64,000 nucleotides of DNA from Macrostomum lignano (GCA_002269645.1 NIVC01003341.1:39274-103273), one strand, 5' to 3'. Positions 4,445-19,231 are shown, numbered from the stretch's first letter. The notes: generated by a model not told the origin, from the sequence alone. Numbers and translations are program-made.

Positions 4445-7400
4445 AGCCGCTACTGTCGCAGCTCGCCGGAGCATAATGGTGGCACAGCCAATCACGGAGG
4501 CCACGCTGAGCAAACCGCAGACTACAGTGGTGAACAGAACCAGACGGAGAGTATCGCACGTAGTTGGCGTGCTTTGGCTTGAGCTGTTTTCTGAAATTGT
4601 TGATTTTTATTCAGCGAAATTTAGGATTAGTGTTGGGTCTTGGTTTTTGCTTTGGGGGAGGCTTTAAGGTTTAGGGGCCGTCATACTAGGGTGCCAGGGA
4701 ATTAGGACAGGTTGTTAGGTCTCGCACGCACTAGTAGTATTACGGTTTCGAAGGCATAATGCTCCGAGTGACCTACGGGGAATCATCACTTGAAGTTCGA
4801 CTTAAAGCAACTGCAATTGATAACTTTGTTTAGAGACGCCGCGAGATCCCATAACAACCCCTTCAAGAACAATGGTCCGTTGGGCAAAATATAGACTGGA
4901 TATCAAAGTTCGCGCAGAATCGCATTGAACTTTGTCGTTCTCAGATAACAGTGTTACGACCTAGGGTGCCAGTCTAAGTCTATCAACTTCTCTCATCAAG
5001 GGGGTTGTAGCCTAGTGGTCAGAGCGTCGGACTCACGACTGAAAGGTCGGGGGGTTCGATTCTCGACCCACTTGGAACGATTGGCGTCCTTGCTTGCGCA
5101 AGACACTTAACTCTGCATTGCTTCAGTTCACCCAGCTGTAAAATGGGTGCCAGCATTAGCTGGGGTAATTGAGGGTGTGTGGCGACCCCCCAGTACTTGG
5201 ACTGAACAGCCGTACGCAGCCTTCAGATGCGCCGCGCAATAGCTGCGGCTGAGCTGTCGGTTGCACATCTGGCCCGATTGAGACAGGTGTACGAGATAAG
5301 CGAATATTACTATCATTATTATTATTATTTTATTACTTTATTTGAAGCATCAGGTCCGGTTTTGAAGTTTTGAAGAGTTGAAGCGGACTATCATCCAGTA
5401 GTCATTGATATACTTTTCATTAGTCCTTGAAACTTACCCTTCCCCGCTTCCATATGATTTATTACAGCATTATGGGCATTCTCTTCGCCTCCGATAGTTT
5501 TTATCGCTGTCACTTGAAATATTTTGTCGCCATTTTGCATCTGCAGGCCAACGCAGACGATTTGCATCGTGGCCGAGTAGCTTCTGTTGGACGTCGAGAT
5601 CGTTGTTACCTGCAAGATAGCCACCAGGGATGTTTGCCTTTTTAGATCATCTTAGAAAATGGATCTAGAATCAGAGCGTCTGCAAGGTTGACTCACATTG
5701 GTGAGACTGCAGTTCACGTTTGACATTTTAGGCCGACCTTCTTGAATCTGCACTGACCATTTCAGAGCATTGGATGCTGATTGTATTGTTAGGTTGCCTT
5801 TGTCTGAAAAATCAAGTGCTTTGAATGTACAGCTTTTGAAAAAAGCTGGAAATGCGACTGATTCACTGTTCCTATAGAAGTACGAGGCGTGGAGGCGTGG
5901 GGTGTACAAAGGACCAGGGGTGTCGCCATGGATTTTATGGTGGGAGGGACAAAGCCAAGAGCTCTACATGTACATGTACATGTACTAAATTCCTCTATGT
6001 ACACTATTTTCAGAATCAGTGCTTTCAGCGATCATTTTAGCGCCACAGACACTCACTTCAGCGCCGCAGTCACTCACTTTAGCGCCGCAGGCACCATTTT
6101 AGCGCCACAGGCACTCATTTTGGCGCCACAGGCACCACTTTTGCGCCGCAGGCACCATTTTAGCGCCACAAGGCACTCACTTTTGCGCCGCAGGCACCAT
6201 TTTAGCGCCACAAGGCACTCACTTTTGCGCCGCAGGCACTATTTTAGCGCCACAAGGCACTCACTTTTGCGCCGCAGGCACCATTTTAGCGCCACAAGGC
6301 ACTCATTTTAGCGCCGCAGGCACCATTTTAGCGCCACAGGCACTCATTTTGGCGCCGCAGGCACCATTTTAGCGCCACAGGCACTCATTTTGGCGCCACA
6401 GGCACTCATTTTGGCGCCGCAGGCACTCATTTTGGCGCCACAGGCACACTCATTTTGGCGCCGCAGGCACTATGTTTGTCGCCCTGAAGCAAAATTATTA
6501 ATTGCCATAACAAGTCAACAAAGGTGGAGTGGGGGGCAAAGCATTGGCATGACCCCGGTAGCTTTTACTGGGTCCCCCCTGCCCCCCCCCCTGTGGCGAC
6601 GCCGCTGCAAAGGACTATTTTCTTTTGGGAAACACTCGTTGAGATCCAACTTCGATCTAAGCCAAAGGTCGTTTTTTTAGTTTTGTGAACAATCTACCAA
6701 GAAAGCCTCTATGTTCGCTTCGCTCCTCGGGAAACAACACTTAAAAGAATTAATCATAGATTTTTTACACTTAATTTATCACTTATTCCCTGAATCCAAC
6801 AATCCAACAATGCGAAAATGCGACAATGCGAAGTCGACTCACAAAACACAGTTGGGGTAGTTTGGCTTAAAACTCGGTTGCTATGGAGATCTGATTGGTT
6901 GGCACGGCAGGCAATTTGCCAATTTCTGTGATTCATCATCCAATGCTTCACTTGCAGTTGATGCGTGCTGGTGTTACCGATGACCTGTAGTGTAGGAGCA
7001 TAAATGTATTTGTAGGAGCAATAGTACTTCAAATTTAAAACATGATGTAATAAAATGTTGTAAATGAATAATATCGTTAAAACGTACAGAAGTTCTATTG
7101 AGCTTGGACAGAACAGTCAAATCATTCTGGACAATTTCGCACGAGTGGCCAATTGCGCTGCAATTCGGCGATGTGAGCGTAACGTTCTCAATGCCGCCCT
7201 CAAGCCAGTAGGAACTCAAGCCGAAACTTATGCTTGCCTGACAGGGCTCTAGAAATTTTAGCAGGGAATTTCTTCGCTTCATCAATAAGACAAGCTGTAA
7301 ACAAGTTGGCATGTAATATGACAAAGTGTTACGCAATCTAGCTCACCAACTATAGTTGAAGGGCTAACATGGAACGTTCTGTACAGAGTAGCAATTGACC

Positions 7401-17500: not shown

Positions 17501-19231
17501 ATGCTAGCTGGTCTCACACTGTCTCAGAGTGCTAATTAGATGCTAGCTAGTCTCACACTGTCTCAGAGTGCTAATTAGATGCTAGCTGGTCTCACACTGT
17601 CTCAGAGTGCTAATTAGATGCTAGCTGGTCTCACACTGTCTCAGAGTGCTAATTAGATGCTAGCTGGTCTCACACTGTCTCAGAGTGCTAATTAGATGCT
17701 AGCTGGTCTCACACTGTCTCAGAGTGCTAATTAGATGCTAGCTGGTCTCACACTGTCTCAGAGTGCTAATTAGATGCTAGCTGGTCTCACACTGTCTCAG
17801 AGTGCTAATTAGATGCTAGCTGGTCTCACACTGTCTCAGAGTGCTAATTAGATGCTAGCTGGTCTCACACTGTCTCAGAGTGCTAATTAGATGCTAGCTG
17901 GTCTCACACTGTCTCAGAGTGCTAATTAGATTCTAGCTGGTCTCACACTGTCTCAGAGTGCTAATTAGATGCTAGCTGGTCTCACACTGTCTCAGAGTGC
18001 TAATTAGATGCTAGCTGGTCTCACACTGTCTCAGAGTGCTAATTAGATGCTAGCTGGTCTCACACTGTCTCAGAGTGCTAATTAGATACTAGCTGGTCTC
18101 ACACTGTCTCAGAGTGCTAATTAGATGCTAGCTGGTCTCACACTGTCTCAGAGTGCTAATTAGATGCTAGCTGGTCTCACACTGTCTCAGAGTGCTAATT
18201 AGATGCTAGCTGGTCTCACACTGTCTCAGAGTGCTAATTAGATGCTAGCTGGTCTCACACTGTCTCAGAGTGCTAATTAGATGCTAGCTGGTCTCACACT
18301 GTCTCAGAGTGCTAATTAGATGCTAGCTGGTCTCACACTGTCTCAGAGTGCTAATTAGATGCTAGCTGGTCTCACACTGTCTCAGAGTGCTAATTATATG
18401 CTAGCTGGTCTCACACTGTCTCAGAGTGCTAATTAGATGCTAGCTGGTCTCACACTGTCTCAGAGTGCTAATTAGATGCTAGCTGGTCTCACACTGTCTC
18501 AGAGTGCTAATTAGATGCTAGCTGGTCTCACACTGTCTCAGAGTGCTAATTAGATGCTAGCTGGTCTCACACTGTCTCAGAGTGCTAATTAGATGCTAGC
18601 TGGTCTCACACTGTCTCAGAGTGCTAATTAGATGCTAGCTGGTCCCACACTGTCTCAGAGTGCTAATTAGATGCTAGCTGGTCTCACACTGTCTCAGAGT
18701 GCTATTTAGATGCTAGCTGGTCTCACACTGTCTCACACTGTGTGTCCCAGACTCCCTCTGCCTCATCATGCATCATGAGAATGAGTCGGTCAGCGTCACT
18801 CACCCCAGTCTCGCACGCTCACCGCCTCCAGCATCATCGGCTGCCTCAGCTGCATCACAATCCACCGAGGCCCGGACCGCACAGCAGCAGGGAATCGGTT
18901 TGTCTCTGACTGCCGACTCTCCCACCAACGGCAGTGCGCACCGCTGGGTTGCCAGGTGCGCAGAACGTCAGCCCTGCTCAGCTGCAGTGTGACTGAAATT
19001 AACGCCATTAATAAAACTGAAGTGTTTTATTACTTAATGTTTTTTGAAGTGTTAAAAATTGAAGTGTTTAAAAAAACTAAAAGCAAAACACAATGCAATT
19101 TTCAAATATTTTAAAGTTAATAAATGCTCACTTTTGTGCTTTTTAATGGAGCAGTCTAAGTCAAAAGACTGCGTTGCGATTCCCAGATATAGAATAATTA
19201 GCACTGGCTGGAGTACCTGGCAGAGCTGCAT
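11576..19231 (-). CDS. Gene A: 12-exon, 613-aa type I membrane Ig-superfamily protein (signal peptide, possible discoidin-like domain, ~3 Ig-like C2-set/nephrin-like domains, TM, Tyr-containing tail)
   Basis: Manual minus-strand exons: 19231-19132, 18992-18804, 17403-17249, 17161-17095, 16979-16804, 16286-16127, 16039-15879, 14622-14442, 13282-13116, 12918-12765, 12675-12497, 11728-11576. All introns are GT-AG, phases join, and the total is 1842 nt ending in TGA. Signal peptide [38 protein letters not shown] and [12 protein letters not shown] are typical of nephrin/KIRREL-type Ig domains. [31 protein letters not shown]. Tail contains ESIYDYETV. Confidence 0.82.
11889..12188. repeat. (GACA)n/(GGCA)n microsatellite, gene A intron 11
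   Basis: Directly visible. Confidence 0.98.
12934..13106. repeat. (GATA)n microsatellite, gene A intron 9
   Basis: Directly visible. Confidence 0.98.
13365..14360. repeat. 20-bp minisatellite (TATTATCTATGGGGTGTCAT)n, gene A intron 8
   Basis: Directly visible. Confidence 0.96.
14745..15102 (-). mobile_element. tRNA-derived SINE, family 2
   Basis: The reverse complement begins GGGGCCGTAGCCCAGCGG (A box) and has GGCTCGATTCC (B box). Core GGGCCGCTGTACACTCCTGTGTGAGTGTG is shared with 16544-16780, 55185-55290 and 60103-60240. Confidence 0.75.
15113..15845. repeat. 19-bp minisatellite (GAGAGAGCAGAGGGCATGG)n; a short piece also lies at ~14675-14745 on the other side of the SINE
   Basis: Directly visible. 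It produces several spurious long ORFs. Confidence 0.96.
16544..16780 (+). mobile_element. SINE family 2, diverged copy, gene A intron 5
   Basis: GGGCCCGTAGCC head, GGCTCGATT B-box remnant, and shared CGGCTTGGCTCTGCT and GGGCCGCTGTACACTCCTGTGTGAG segments. Confidence 0.7.
17425..18730. repeat. 39-bp VNTR, ~33-34 nearly identical copies, gene A intron 2
   Basis: Same unit as 9653-9830, with only scattered single-base variants. Confidence 0.97.

Follow-up and report, generated by a model that had tools for sequence, protein, structure and literature searches.

The window, a stretch of 64,000 nucleotides of Macrostomum lignano DNA, contains between positions 4445 and 19231 two head-to-tail genes on the minus strand, A and B, which are tandem paralogs. 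The model of gene A comprises 12 exons and 613 amino acids, with GT-AG introns only and an unbroken reading frame; that of gene B comprises 13 exons within the window, with canonical AG/GT sites only and a frame open throughout. Many of the introns are filled by tandem repeats. Of the two limits that the initial annotation assigned to the pair, 19231 is indeed the ATG of gene A, but 4445 is merely the end of the transmembrane (TM) exon of gene B and not the end of the gene. Its final (tail) exon is absent from the window and lies beyond the left edge; in the homeologous contig, it is located ~100 bp past the point equivalent to window position 1. The features of gene A are as follows (P0008 and P0016 are M. 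lignano proteins; L001 and L002 are related loci discussed below):

19132..19231, minus strand: A exon 1, ATG and signal peptide, end phase 1; matched at 97% identity by the first exon of P0008 / L001 copy 1
18804..18992, minus strand: A exon 2 (189 nt, phase 1-1), start of the N-terminal module (NTD)
17249..17403, minus strand: A exon 3, phase 1-0, middle of the NTD
17095..17161, minus strand: A exon 4, 67 nt, phase 0-1, last strand(s) of the NTD
16804..16979, minus strand: A exon 5 (revised), Ig-like domain 1, first half; motif matches paralog P0016
16127..16286, minus strand: A exon 6, Ig-like domain 1, second half (..HHGSELVC..)
15879..16039, minus strand: A exon 7, Ig-like domain 2, first half
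14442..14622, minus strand: A exon 8, Ig-like domain 2, second half; weak donor gtgcgc, backed by the family motif IS.ISEPC
13116..13282, minus strand: A exon 9, Ig-like domain 3, first half
12765..12918, minus strand: A exon 10, Ig-like domain 3, second half
12497..12675, minus strand: A exon 11, stalk and TM helix; acceptor uncertain by 24 nt
11576..11728, minus strand: A exon 12, cytoplasmic tail with SIYDYETV and stop codon; 87% identical exon in L002
17277..18995, minus strand: near-identical, apparently homogenised block of A (exon 2, all of intron 2, first 127 nt of exon 3)
17424..18735, no strand: satellite in A intron 2, 39-bp unit, 33.6 copies

The corresponding features of gene B are:

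10204..10285, minus strand: B exon 1, ATG and signal peptide (MMTTGLGTILLLMAVWKAG); confirmed by P0026
9899..10087, minus strand: B exon 2, 189 nt, NTD
9474..9631, minus strand: B exon 3, NTD
9321..9387, minus strand: B exon 4, 67 nt, NTD
9050..9228, minus strand: B exon 5, Ig-like domain 1, first half
8508..8643, minus strand: B exon 6, Ig-like domain 1, second half
8263..8426, minus strand: B exon 7, Ig-like domain 2, first half
7347..7521, minus strand: B exon 8, Ig-like domain 2, second half
7088..7248, minus strand: B exon 9, Ig-like domain 3, first half
6843..6984, minus strand: B exon 10, Ig-like domain 3, second half
5697..5803, minus strand: B exon 11, first half of a membrane-proximal beta-sandwich (initially annotated as FN3; probably a shortened fourth Ig-like domain)
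5438..5609, minus strand: B exon 12, membrane-proximal domain, second half
4445..4590, minus strand: B exon 13, stalk and TM helix; ends at a gtgagt donor
9505..10090, minus strand: near-identical, apparently homogenised block of B, content as in A, with a shorter satellite
9652..9832, no strand: satellite in B intron 2, 39-bp unit as in A intron 2, 4.6 copies

The tandem arrangement proposed initially is confirmed: the peptides quoted in its favor are all encoded on the minus strand at the positions given, and both models assemble. The exons 2 are 189 nt long in both genes (18992-18804 and 10087-9899) and the exons 4 are 67 nt long (17161-17095 and 9387-9321). The claimed match of the first ten exons in size class and phase also stands, as the phases are identical through exon 10 (exon ends 1,1,0,1,0,1,0,1,0,1) and the sizes are similar (A/B, in nt: 100/82, 189/189, 155/158, 67/67, 176/179 for exons 1-5, and 160/136, 161/164, 181/175, 167/161, 154/142 for exons 6-10). 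The paralogy is evident from tblastx matches in colinear exons, from the identical intron phases, and from motifs common to A, B and their relatives (ISEPC, CS.W.VSHSCWL and FSS.H.L.V..M...W..RC.VNQSG); a search for a third family member within the window found none. Two M. lignano proteins from GenBank, 92-94% identical to gene B, independently confirm its junctions: PAA74300.1 (P0026) spans exon 1 to the tail, and P0008 (BOX15_Mlig025426g1) agrees from exon 2/3 onward. The pair had been described as hidden, which holds for the body of gene A, for which the protein database contains no matching protein, but not for gene B, whose homeologs are annotated there as 'hypothetical protein' or 'Ig-like domain-containing protein'.

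Both genes encode predicted single-pass type-I membrane glycoproteins. A signal peptide precedes an N-terminal module of 137 residues, for which exons 2-4 code, and three Ig-like domains follow, with two exons per domain (phases 1-0 and 0-1). Next come a stalk and a TM helix, and the tyrosine motifs lie in a cytoplasmic tail that is short and acidic. In gene A the third Ig-like domain leads directly to the TM exon and to the tail exon with SIYDYETV, just as originally described. In gene B a fourth, shortened beta-sandwich is placed between the third Ig-like domain and the stalk; the two additional exons reported for it are real, but their FN3 identity is not borne out. No Pfam fn3 match was obtained for exons 11-12, and hhalign assigned a probability of 0.07% to their relationship with a provisional fibronectin FN10 sequence. 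The domain is a beta-sandwich in the model of P0026, its versions in the paralogs possess two Cys residues ~40-50 residues apart, as in Ig domains, and its weak matches in a PDB profile search are antibody CH1 domains (E 0.6-3). It is probably a fourth, shortened Ig-like domain rather than FN3.

The Ig-like character of these proteins is nearly invisible to curated domain models. Among the Pfam models ig, I-set, V-set and C2-set_2, none reaches the threshold in gene A or ten relatives; the only match is that of C2-set_2 to gene A (E=0.053, 14 bits vs. the cut-off of 21), with nothing in the ten relatives, in which HMMER revealed no significant Pfam domain at all. The HMMER comparison proposed in the initial annotation thus leaves C2-set_2, fn3 and F5_F8_type_C all below the Pfam threshold in A and the ten relatives. 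The fold is revealed by structure prediction, carried out for the ectodomain of P0026, a homeolog 92% identical to B, rather than for a protein from the window. Domains 1-4 of this model are all beta, and confident beta-sandwiches are predicted; pLDDT is 74-87 in domains 2-3, 60-88 in domain 4 and 55-69 in domain 1. A Foldseek search of the PDB yielded 562 matches at E<=0.001, led by multi-Ig receptors: SYG-2 D1-D4 at the top (3.5e-10; SYG-2 is the nematode nephrin), followed by ICAM-5, ICAM-1, SIRP-alpha, nectin-1, MAG, CD22 and Rst, as well as SIRP-gamma and PirB/LILRB3. At the level of sequence, the alignment of domain 3 contains an invariant Cys pair C30...C80 and W76, and Cys pairs are present in domains 2 and 4 of the paralogs; these are candidates for the conserved B- and F-strand cysteines of Ig domains. 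The predicted structure shows the Ig-like fold proposed initially for domains 2-3, and less firmly for domain 1 and the fourth domain.

The suggested resemblance of the N-terminal module to the F5/8 type C (discoidin) domain is not supported by sequence comparison. The two are alike in size (137 vs. ~150 residues) and in the N-terminal position in a receptor, and hhalign places the 'W-L-V-x-Q-L' stretch of the NTD opposite the 'WLQVDF' strand in factor VIII C2. However, the hhalign probability against the verified factor VIII C2 sequence is 1.1%, Pfam F5_F8_type_C gives no match in 15 family proteins, and a PDB profile search with the NTD returned nothing but spurious designed Kelch proteins. 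Read by eye, the NTD does not match the PROSITE-style discoidin signature either. Structure prediction and Foldseek, suggested earlier for the exon 2-4 domain, provided a poor model (pLDDT 55 or below 50 in two runs) and no match with E below 1.5. The module tolerates change, as it is ~30% identical in the divergent paralog P0021. Gene B has W-to-G, R-to-C and W-to-L substitutions at NTD sites that most paralogs keep unchanged.

The 32 relatives detected are without exception proteins of M. lignano, in agreement with the earlier suggestion of a lineage-specific receptor family. Family members from M. lignano alone were retrieved when the NTD profile was run with HMMER against 1.84 billion representatives and when 5.8 billion proteins were screened by a word-seeded profile search; the other matches were two weak ones, to proteins with Pfam bacterial Ig-like repeats. 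The family includes at least 30 M. lignano-restricted paralogs with 3-4 domains, and at least six copies of exon 2 are located on one strand within 97 kb of NIVC01001776.1, forming a tandem array. Rather than clear one-to-one orthology to a known receptor, we find ~10% identity to SYG-2 in the Foldseek alignment and multi-copy paralogs. These sequence searches support the interpretation of the pair as a tandem duplicate within a multi-copy family so far known from M. lignano alone.

Comparison of the copies shows two modes of evolution, in which the Ig-like bodies diverge fast and the exon 2-3 block is kept uniform. Genes A and B are 97% identical at the nucleotide level in exon 2 and 84% in exon 3, vs. 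44-54% in the remaining exons (54% in exon 4), and their Ig-like bodies are near saturation. The initial annotation correctly noted both the low identity outside exons 2-3 and the high identity within them, but missed its cause, concerted evolution that includes the intron. Across all copies the block shows 93-100% identity; it spans exon 2, intron 2 with its satellite and the greater part of exon 3, and its homology begins within ~10 nt of the exon 2 acceptor. The flanks of intron 2 are 97-100% identical, with diversity (among 8 copies) of 0.037 and 0 vs. 0.038-0.059 in the exons, and GC3 peaks at 0.75 in the block vs. 0.3-0.55 in the neighboring exons. The pN/pS ratio is 0.9-1.6 inside the block (same 8 copies) and ~1.4 between B and its homeolog L001 copy 1 (7 synonymous and 32 non-synonymous differences), estimates that rest on few sites and may include pseudogenes. 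Of the L001 copies, one has lost 5 nt from exon 2 and one other is devoid of exon 3; a frameshifted copy is nonetheless homogenised in the block. Because conservation of the intron equals that of the exons, pN/pS is ~1, GC is elevated, and even a frameshifted copy is homogenised, the near-identity is best read as the product of concerted evolution, through gene conversion or unequal exchange, and not of selection on the protein.

The block would also serve as a crossover point, giving rise to A/B hybrid and A-less arrangements. L001 copy 1, a compact and fully open gene that matches a GenBank model, joins the promoter, exon 1 and exon 2 of A to the body of B, with the junction at the block; its flanks are 97% identical to the 5' part of A, 96.7% to the 3' part of B, and ~90% to the 5' paralog of B. 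L002 is colinear with the window apart from the missing exons 1-11 of A, and the colinearity stops near window position 12191, in A intron 11, at an (AGAC)n array. Each of these arrangements is known from one contig of single long-read assemblies, with joins in near-identical repeats that could be misassembled.

An alternative would attribute the uniformity of exons 2-3 not to gene conversion but to strong purifying selection, exerted on an essential ligand-binding domain of discoidin type that all members have in common. The bulk of a discrete module (exons 2-4, phase 1-1) does fall within the block, the homology sets in next to the exon 2 acceptor, and the best hhalign alignment to factor VIII C2 is in register with the discoidin 'WLQVD' core strand. 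Nonetheless, the intron 2 flanks vary as little as the exons or less, pN/pS is ~1, the frameshifted copy is homogenised too, exon 4 of the same NTD is far less conserved, P0021 has diverged there, and neither Pfam, the PDB nor hhalign supports discoidin membership, which makes this explanation very unlikely. It is also unlikely, though less so, that the L001 hybrid and the A-less L002 are assembly errors at the 39-bp satellite and that the real history is a simple tandem duplication with conversion. The breakpoints coincide with 0.2-1.3 kb arrays, whose repeats are 99-100% identical and flanking exons 97% identical, classic sites of misjoins, and each arrangement comes from a single contig. 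On the other hand, the L002 breakpoint is away from the block, L001 copy 1 is intact and agrees with a GenBank model, and the differing flank identities fit distinct loci.

One or both genes of the pair could alternatively represent non-functional, decaying duplicates in a repeat-rich region, with open frames left from recent duplication. The pN/pS values near or above 1 are also typical of decaying genes, NTD residues that are otherwise invariant have changed in B, the family includes pseudogenes (the defective L001 copies), and the body of A has neither an annotated counterpart nor a Pfam match. Against this, A and B retain, despite 44-54% identity, 12-13 open exons, canonical splice sites, identical phases and the Cys/Trp framework; their preservation near saturation implies long-term purifying selection on the fold. 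Moreover, GenBank calls the homeologs of B full-length genes, and high overall pN/pS combined with a conserved framework is usual in recognition receptors. We therefore regard decay as quite improbable, and return to functional receptors, for which a more specific role has to be considered, namely an Alr-like system of allorecognition or gamete/partner recognition, with polymorphic variable domains separating self from non-self. The Alr proteins of Hydractinia are single-pass membrane proteins with 1-3 tandem Ig-like domains and a membrane-proximal beta-sandwich, so divergent that structure prediction alone reveals the fold, and are encoded in tandem clusters with pseudogenes, with tyrosine motifs in the tails (PMC9546547). 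The flatworm family shares this layout, the Pfam-invisible ectodomains, the clusters with pseudogenes and the tail tyrosines, and its fast non-synonymous divergence, presence/absence and hybrid genes likewise resemble the Alr complex (PMC9546547). However, the two families exhibit no detectable sequence homology, the searches for the flatworm family having returned only its M. lignano members, and the flatworm proteins possess the additional 137-residue module, a membrane-distal part that is the least variable, opposite to Alr1/2. The 22 flatworm tails scanned, including that of A, contain no ITAM (Yxx[IL]x(6-9)Yxx[LI]), and no allorecognition phenotype is known in the flatworm. M. lignano is known neither to form colonies nor to fuse. 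We consider a dedicated role in allorecognition or gamete/partner recognition very unlikely.

Other known receptors provide further comparisons. Nephrin possesses 8-10 Ig domains plus FN3, and its YDxV motifs bind Nck. SYG-2 and the Kirre/SYG-1/Rst proteins are the best structural matches (SYG-2 D1-D4, 3.5e-10; Rst D1-D2, 9.7e-06), and these IRM adhesion receptors resemble the flatworm proteins in having a chain of Ig-like domains, then a TM helix, and acidic tyrosine motifs in the tail. In contrast, the flatworm proteins contain 3-4 domains, show neither substantial identity (~10%) nor 1:1 orthology to nephrin/SYG-2, and belong to a multi-copy, species-restricted family, whereas nephrin is a conserved single gene without such an N-terminal module. 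In vertebrates, the paired Ig-like receptors of the KIR, LILR and SIRP type are encoded in tandem arrays. These change through duplication, gene conversion and unequal crossing-over within homologous introns, which yields hybrid genes and presence/absence haplotypes, and the receptor tails carry tyrosine motifs. The flatworm arrays, the candidate hybrid gene and the candidate A-less locus are similar in this respect, and the Foldseek search also returned SIRP-alpha, SIRP-gamma and PirB/LILRB3; however, there is no homology, homogenisation in the flatworm family is restricted to a single block with sharp limits, set around an intron that bears a satellite, and the genes outside it are near saturation.

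The tyrosine motifs of the family include YDYE/YDYP/YDVP and YEDPD.Y..I, with YDYE/YETV in the tail of A. A scan with [ILVS]xYxx[IVL] detected an ITIM-like SVYLVL in one subfamily (P0018, P0032, P0036 and P0039) and not in A; none was found in the tails of the B homeologs P0008 and P0026, the tail of B itself being outside the window. Taken as a whole, with a probability of about 0.72, genes A and B are M. lignano Ig-like receptor paralogs with diverging bodies, a conversion-homogenised block, and a putative role in recognition or adhesion. As putative receptors at the cell surface, they would bind ligands via the variable Ig-like domains and signal via the tyrosine motifs of their tails, which, once phosphorylated, would recruit SH2 adaptors.

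The peptides quoted in the initial annotation were all found, on the minus strand, and the head-to-tail pair with matched exons that it described stands: intron phases are the same through exon 10, and exon sizes agree at 189/189 nt (exon 2), 67/67 nt (exon 4) and 176/179 nt (exon 5). Colinear matches between the two halves were also recovered by tblastx, for exon 2 (92% amino acid identity), exon 4 (41%) and the Ig-core exons. The two models, built manually from splice sites and reading frames, are:

19231 to 11576, minus strand: gene A, 12 exons, 613 aa
10285 to 4445, minus strand: gene B, 13 exons within the window

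Gene A encodes, in this order, a signal peptide, an N-terminal domain (NTD; exons 2-4, 137 residues, a phase 1-1 unit), three two-exon domains, a transmembrane exon and a tail exon with SIYDYETV followed by a stop codon. Gene B has one extra two-exon domain (exons 11 and 12) ahead of its transmembrane exon, which closes at a gtgagt donor; a tail exon of B was sought in window positions 1-4444 and is absent there, and in the homeologous contig the last exon of B is a single exon, about 100 bp past the equivalent of window position 1. All introns of both genes are GT-AG. Every junction of B is verified residue by residue by the GenBank protein PAA74300.1 (P0026; 92% identical), the product of a B homeolog, and the junctions from exon 2/3 onward by a second one, BOX15_Mlig025426g1 (P0008; 94% identical), the remainder of which is uninformative because its exons 1 and 2 are of the A type. 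The weakest points of gene A are the acceptor of exon 11 and the weak donor of exon 8, the latter backed by the family motif IS.ISEPC; exon 5, originally placed at 17051-16891 (donor gtctgc), was revised to 16979-16804 on comparison with paralogs. Exon 2 (18804-18992 in A, 9899-10087 in B) is open in all three sense frames and in antisense frames owing to its high GC content, giving several spurious overlapping ORFs of 40-75 aa, and some UniProt models (P0007 and P0038) translate it in the wrong frame.

The predicted N-terminal part of A, used as a query, retrieved M. lignano proteins only, 81-95% identical over exons 2-3. The profile of the NTD matched 22 proteins among 1.84 billion representatives (HMMER) and that of the full-length members 32, all from M. 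lignano save two weak non-flatworm matches of the NTD profile (P0024 and P0025), which were dismissed as relatives since they carry Pfam bacterial Ig-like repeat domains. A query running from exon 4 to the tail of gene A, approximate in that its exon 5 was wrong, gave no match at E<=0.01 among 5.8 billion proteins. Annotation of the members goes no further than "hypothetical" or "Ig-like domain-containing" protein, and literature searches on the locus tags, the Macrostomum Ig superfamily and Macrostomum gene conversion returned nothing relevant and no paper on this flatworm family. Several database models consist of two adjacent genes fused into one, which indicates tandem arrays, and contigs of GCA_002269645.1 related to the window are 94-97% identical to it in colinear stretches. 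The window is accordingly from M. lignano, as a further homeolog, haplotype or assembly, or else from a very close relative. The family that this locus defines numbers at least 30 members, so far seen solely in M. lignano.

When gene A and ten relatives were scanned against Pfam with HMMER, none had a significant domain, be it Ig, fn3 or F5_F8_type_C, the best score being that of C2-set_2 at E=0.053. At the level of fold, the Ig-like ectodomain is nevertheless supported. The AlphaFold model of the PAA74300.1 ectodomain, computed from a 16-sequence family alignment, is all beta beyond residue 142; its pLDDT is 55-69 for domain 1, 74-87 for both domain 2 and domain 3, and 60-88 for the domain next to the membrane. 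Foldseek comparison of this model with the PDB gave 562 matches at E<=0.001, the top ones being SYG-2 D1-D4 (3.5e-10), ICAM-5, ICAM-1, SIRP-alpha, SIRP-gamma, nectin-1, Necl-4, MAG, CD22, RAGE and Rst; sequence identity to these structures is about 10%, and the family is orthologous to none of them. Standard domain models miss the Ig-like domains of this family.

The more specific domain claims are weakened. The additional domain of B had been called FN3-like, and similarity to FN3 is absent (hhalign probability 0.07% against an unverified fibronectin FN10 sequence). In paralogs this fourth domain has two Cys residues about 40-50 residues apart, the copy in B being about 20 residues shorter in the middle; its profile finds only weak matches to antibody CH1 domains among PDB sequences, and hhalign gave no support for its similarity to domain 3. 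We read it, from these sequence features, as a putative shortened fourth Ig-like domain. The resemblance of the NTD to discoidin is not supported either: hhalign assigned a probability of 1.1% to its alignment with the factor VIII C2 domain (a sequence verified against PDB entries at E of about 1e-105 to 1e-140), although at that probability the alignment falls on the discoidin core strand. The AlphaFold model of the NTD is unusable (pLDDT 55 alone, below 50 inside the ectodomain), and Foldseek, run on this unusable model, found no match. When profiles of the NTD and of domains 3 and 4 were compared with PDB sequences, all hits were spurious (designed Kelch repeats, summed over repeats, the MS2 coat protein and the weak CH1 matches), so that the NTD has no real match there. 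As the divergent paralog P0021 illustrates (about 30% identity), this domain is able to change.

A real and testable peculiarity of the locus is a sharply bounded homogenised block with a satellite intron. Similarity between A and B detectable by blastn is confined to the tract from about the exon 2 acceptor through 127 nt of exon 3, including all of intron 2, which is mostly a 39-bp satellite (33.6 copies in A, 4.6 in B). Nucleotide identity is 97% in exon 2; exon 3 has 84% overall and 93-97% over the initial 127 nt, as against 44-54% in the other exons, and the unique flanks of intron 2 are 97% and 100% identical. Six more copies of the block, 93-100% identical, lie on contig NIVC01001776.1, and the sequences flanking them align only between orthologous parts. 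Among the eight copies, the exons are as diverse as the intron flanks or more so (0.038 and 0.059 as against 0.037 and 0), pN/pS amounts to 1.58 for exon 2 and 0.93 for exon 3, and A and B differ within the block by 12 non-synonymous and 2 synonymous changes. Moreover, even the copy whose exon 2 has lost 5 nt is homogenised, and GC content peaks at the block (0.62-0.69, GC3 0.75, versus a GC content of 0.34-0.43 in adjoining exons 1 and 4). These patterns argue against constraint at the protein level and for concerted evolution by gene conversion or unequal exchange, which was probably seeded by the satellite and in which conversion was possibly GC-biased.

Two contigs related to the window differ from it, as assembled, in gene content. 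The first gene on NIVC01001776.1 corresponds to A from the upstream region to the end of exon 2, intron 1 included (97-99% identical), and beyond intron 2 it corresponds to B, with exon 3 and the B body in full (96-100% identical); such an A/B hybrid is the product expected of exchange inside the block. Contig NIVC01000958.1 is colinear with the window from the tail exon of A through B and the downstream satellites, and has no counterpart of A exons 1-11 within 8 kb upstream. Both may be real differences between homeologs or haplotypes; that they are in part misassemblies at repeats we consider rather unlikely. Within the tandem array (NIVC01001776.1:336021-433236), the copies at 38078 and 55680 are defective and likely pseudogenes, one having lost 5 nt of exon 2 and the other retaining a mere 35-nt remnant of exon 3. 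A second partial B-like body (exons 6-13) is found at 80217-83294 of the array; the GenBank model of BOX15_Mlig025426g1, which covers 77 kb (10001-87216), extends past it and may have taken its tail exon from this copy.

Outside the block, the Ig-like bodies of A and B are near saturation, yet the frames are open and the phases and framework residues are kept, which indicates long-term constraint on the fold. Of the changes that separate B from its close homeolog, 32 are non-synonymous and 7 synonymous (pN/pS 1.4), and the introns have diverged by about 3%; selection that is either relaxed or diversifying would fit this. Where window 7347-8426 is compared with array positions 12234-13403, exons 7 and 8 are 100% identical between B and the homeolog, the neighbouring exons differing by 1-7.5%, and introns 4 and 6 are likewise identical; this mosaic suggests that recent exchange may have occurred between homeologous loci too.

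The block could also be a cassette dedicated to recombination and regulation, its uniformity being maintained in the DNA as such, with the NTD in parallel a new extracellular fold that binds an invariant partner, but we regard this joint reading as a long shot. If it were true, the block would allow promoters and leaders to be combined with one receptor body or another, an exchange of which the A/B hybrid would be one product, and it could help to choose one family member per cell, in the manner of the conserved promoter or intron elements of protocadherin or var genes.

The window as a whole is eukaryotic and satellite-rich. Distinct minisatellites are unusually dense (1-876, 1750-4372, 10645-11339, 19780-20796 and others, with more in introns; periods of 14, 41, 21/43, 25 nt and others), and several arrays share their position with NIVC01000958.1 at 85-93% identity, so they are old and evolve in place. 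Intron 10 of B (6032-6471) carries a 21-nt repeat, TCATTTTAGCGCCACAGGCAC, and the region upstream of A (19780-20796) a 25-nt array containing GGCGCCAAAATGAGTG; by eye the two look like reverse-complement relatives, and if related they would represent one satellite family in both orientations around the gene pair. A structured RNA in intron 2 was considered and rejected (folding z-score +2.2), and the whole window has no Rfam match. The other features are:

25853-26434, minus strand: mariner-type transposase fragment in an AT-rich stretch (Pfam Transposase_1, E=3e-07)
30278-31087 and 34026-35024, minus strand: tandem single-exon ORFs of 269 and 332 aa
54414-54995, plus strand: DUF4615 ORF (E=1e-15), probably a single-exon or first-exon gene
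55907-56608 and 61723-62142, plus strand: initial and final coding parts of a gene for a DEG/ENaC channel (amiloride-sensitive sodium channel; Pfam ASC, E=2.3e-14 and 0.0014)

The DEG/ENaC gene probably extends over about 56-62 kb, with satellites in its introns. The tandem ORFs are near-identical over the first ~180 shared residues and divergent in the C-terminal third; both possess a hydrophobic anchor at the N terminus as well as a Cys-rich stretch, and the C-terminal part looks C-type-lectin-like by eye (WLGGYQ...GGWYWVGCN...EPDNN), with no Pfam match at E<=0.01.

In the 22 family proteins with a scorable tail, gene A included, the cytoplasmic tails have 2-7 tyrosines in acidic contexts, with motifs such as YDYE/YDYP/YDVP, YEDPD.Y..I and PVYEEV, and an ITIM-like SVYLVL in one subfamily; an ITAM was found in none of them. 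With the architecture, fold class, distribution and evolutionary pattern of the family established, we infer its localisation, ligands and signalling as follows. A and B would code for type-I receptors that are glycosylated, reside at the cell surface and belong to an Ig-like family restricted to Macrostomum; ligands are likely bound by the variable Ig-like domains. The uniform NTD may provide a common interaction surface or be a mere passenger of a conversion hot spot. The tails would signal via phosphotyrosine, their motifs, judging from general knowledge, docking Nck-, Crk- or Src-type SH2 adaptors.

Vertebrate KIR/LILR clusters, in which conversion and hybrid genes occur, are the closest analogue in these two respects. 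The closest structural match is to nephrin/SYG-2. In kind, the nearest analogue is found in the Alr family of Hydractinia, which has divergent Ig-like domains seen via structure prediction, a membrane-proximal beta-sandwich, tyrosine motifs, and clusters with pseudogenes (PMC9546547). For want of homology, the flatworm family is a member of none of these three groups. With its Ig-like domains, uncharacterised NTD and tyrosine-motif tails, the family is a candidate immune, adhesion or partner-recognition system.

Free-living flatworms are models for regeneration and sexual conflict, yet, to our knowledge, hardly anything has been learned of the surface receptors that they use in recognition. 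The A/B family displays two opposite evolutionary regimes within one gene, a GC-rich homogenised tract beside exons diverged to saturation, in which the differences between homeologs are mostly amino acid changes. It thereby makes gene conversion, satellite-driven exchange and the formation of hybrid genes testable questions in a tractable animal.
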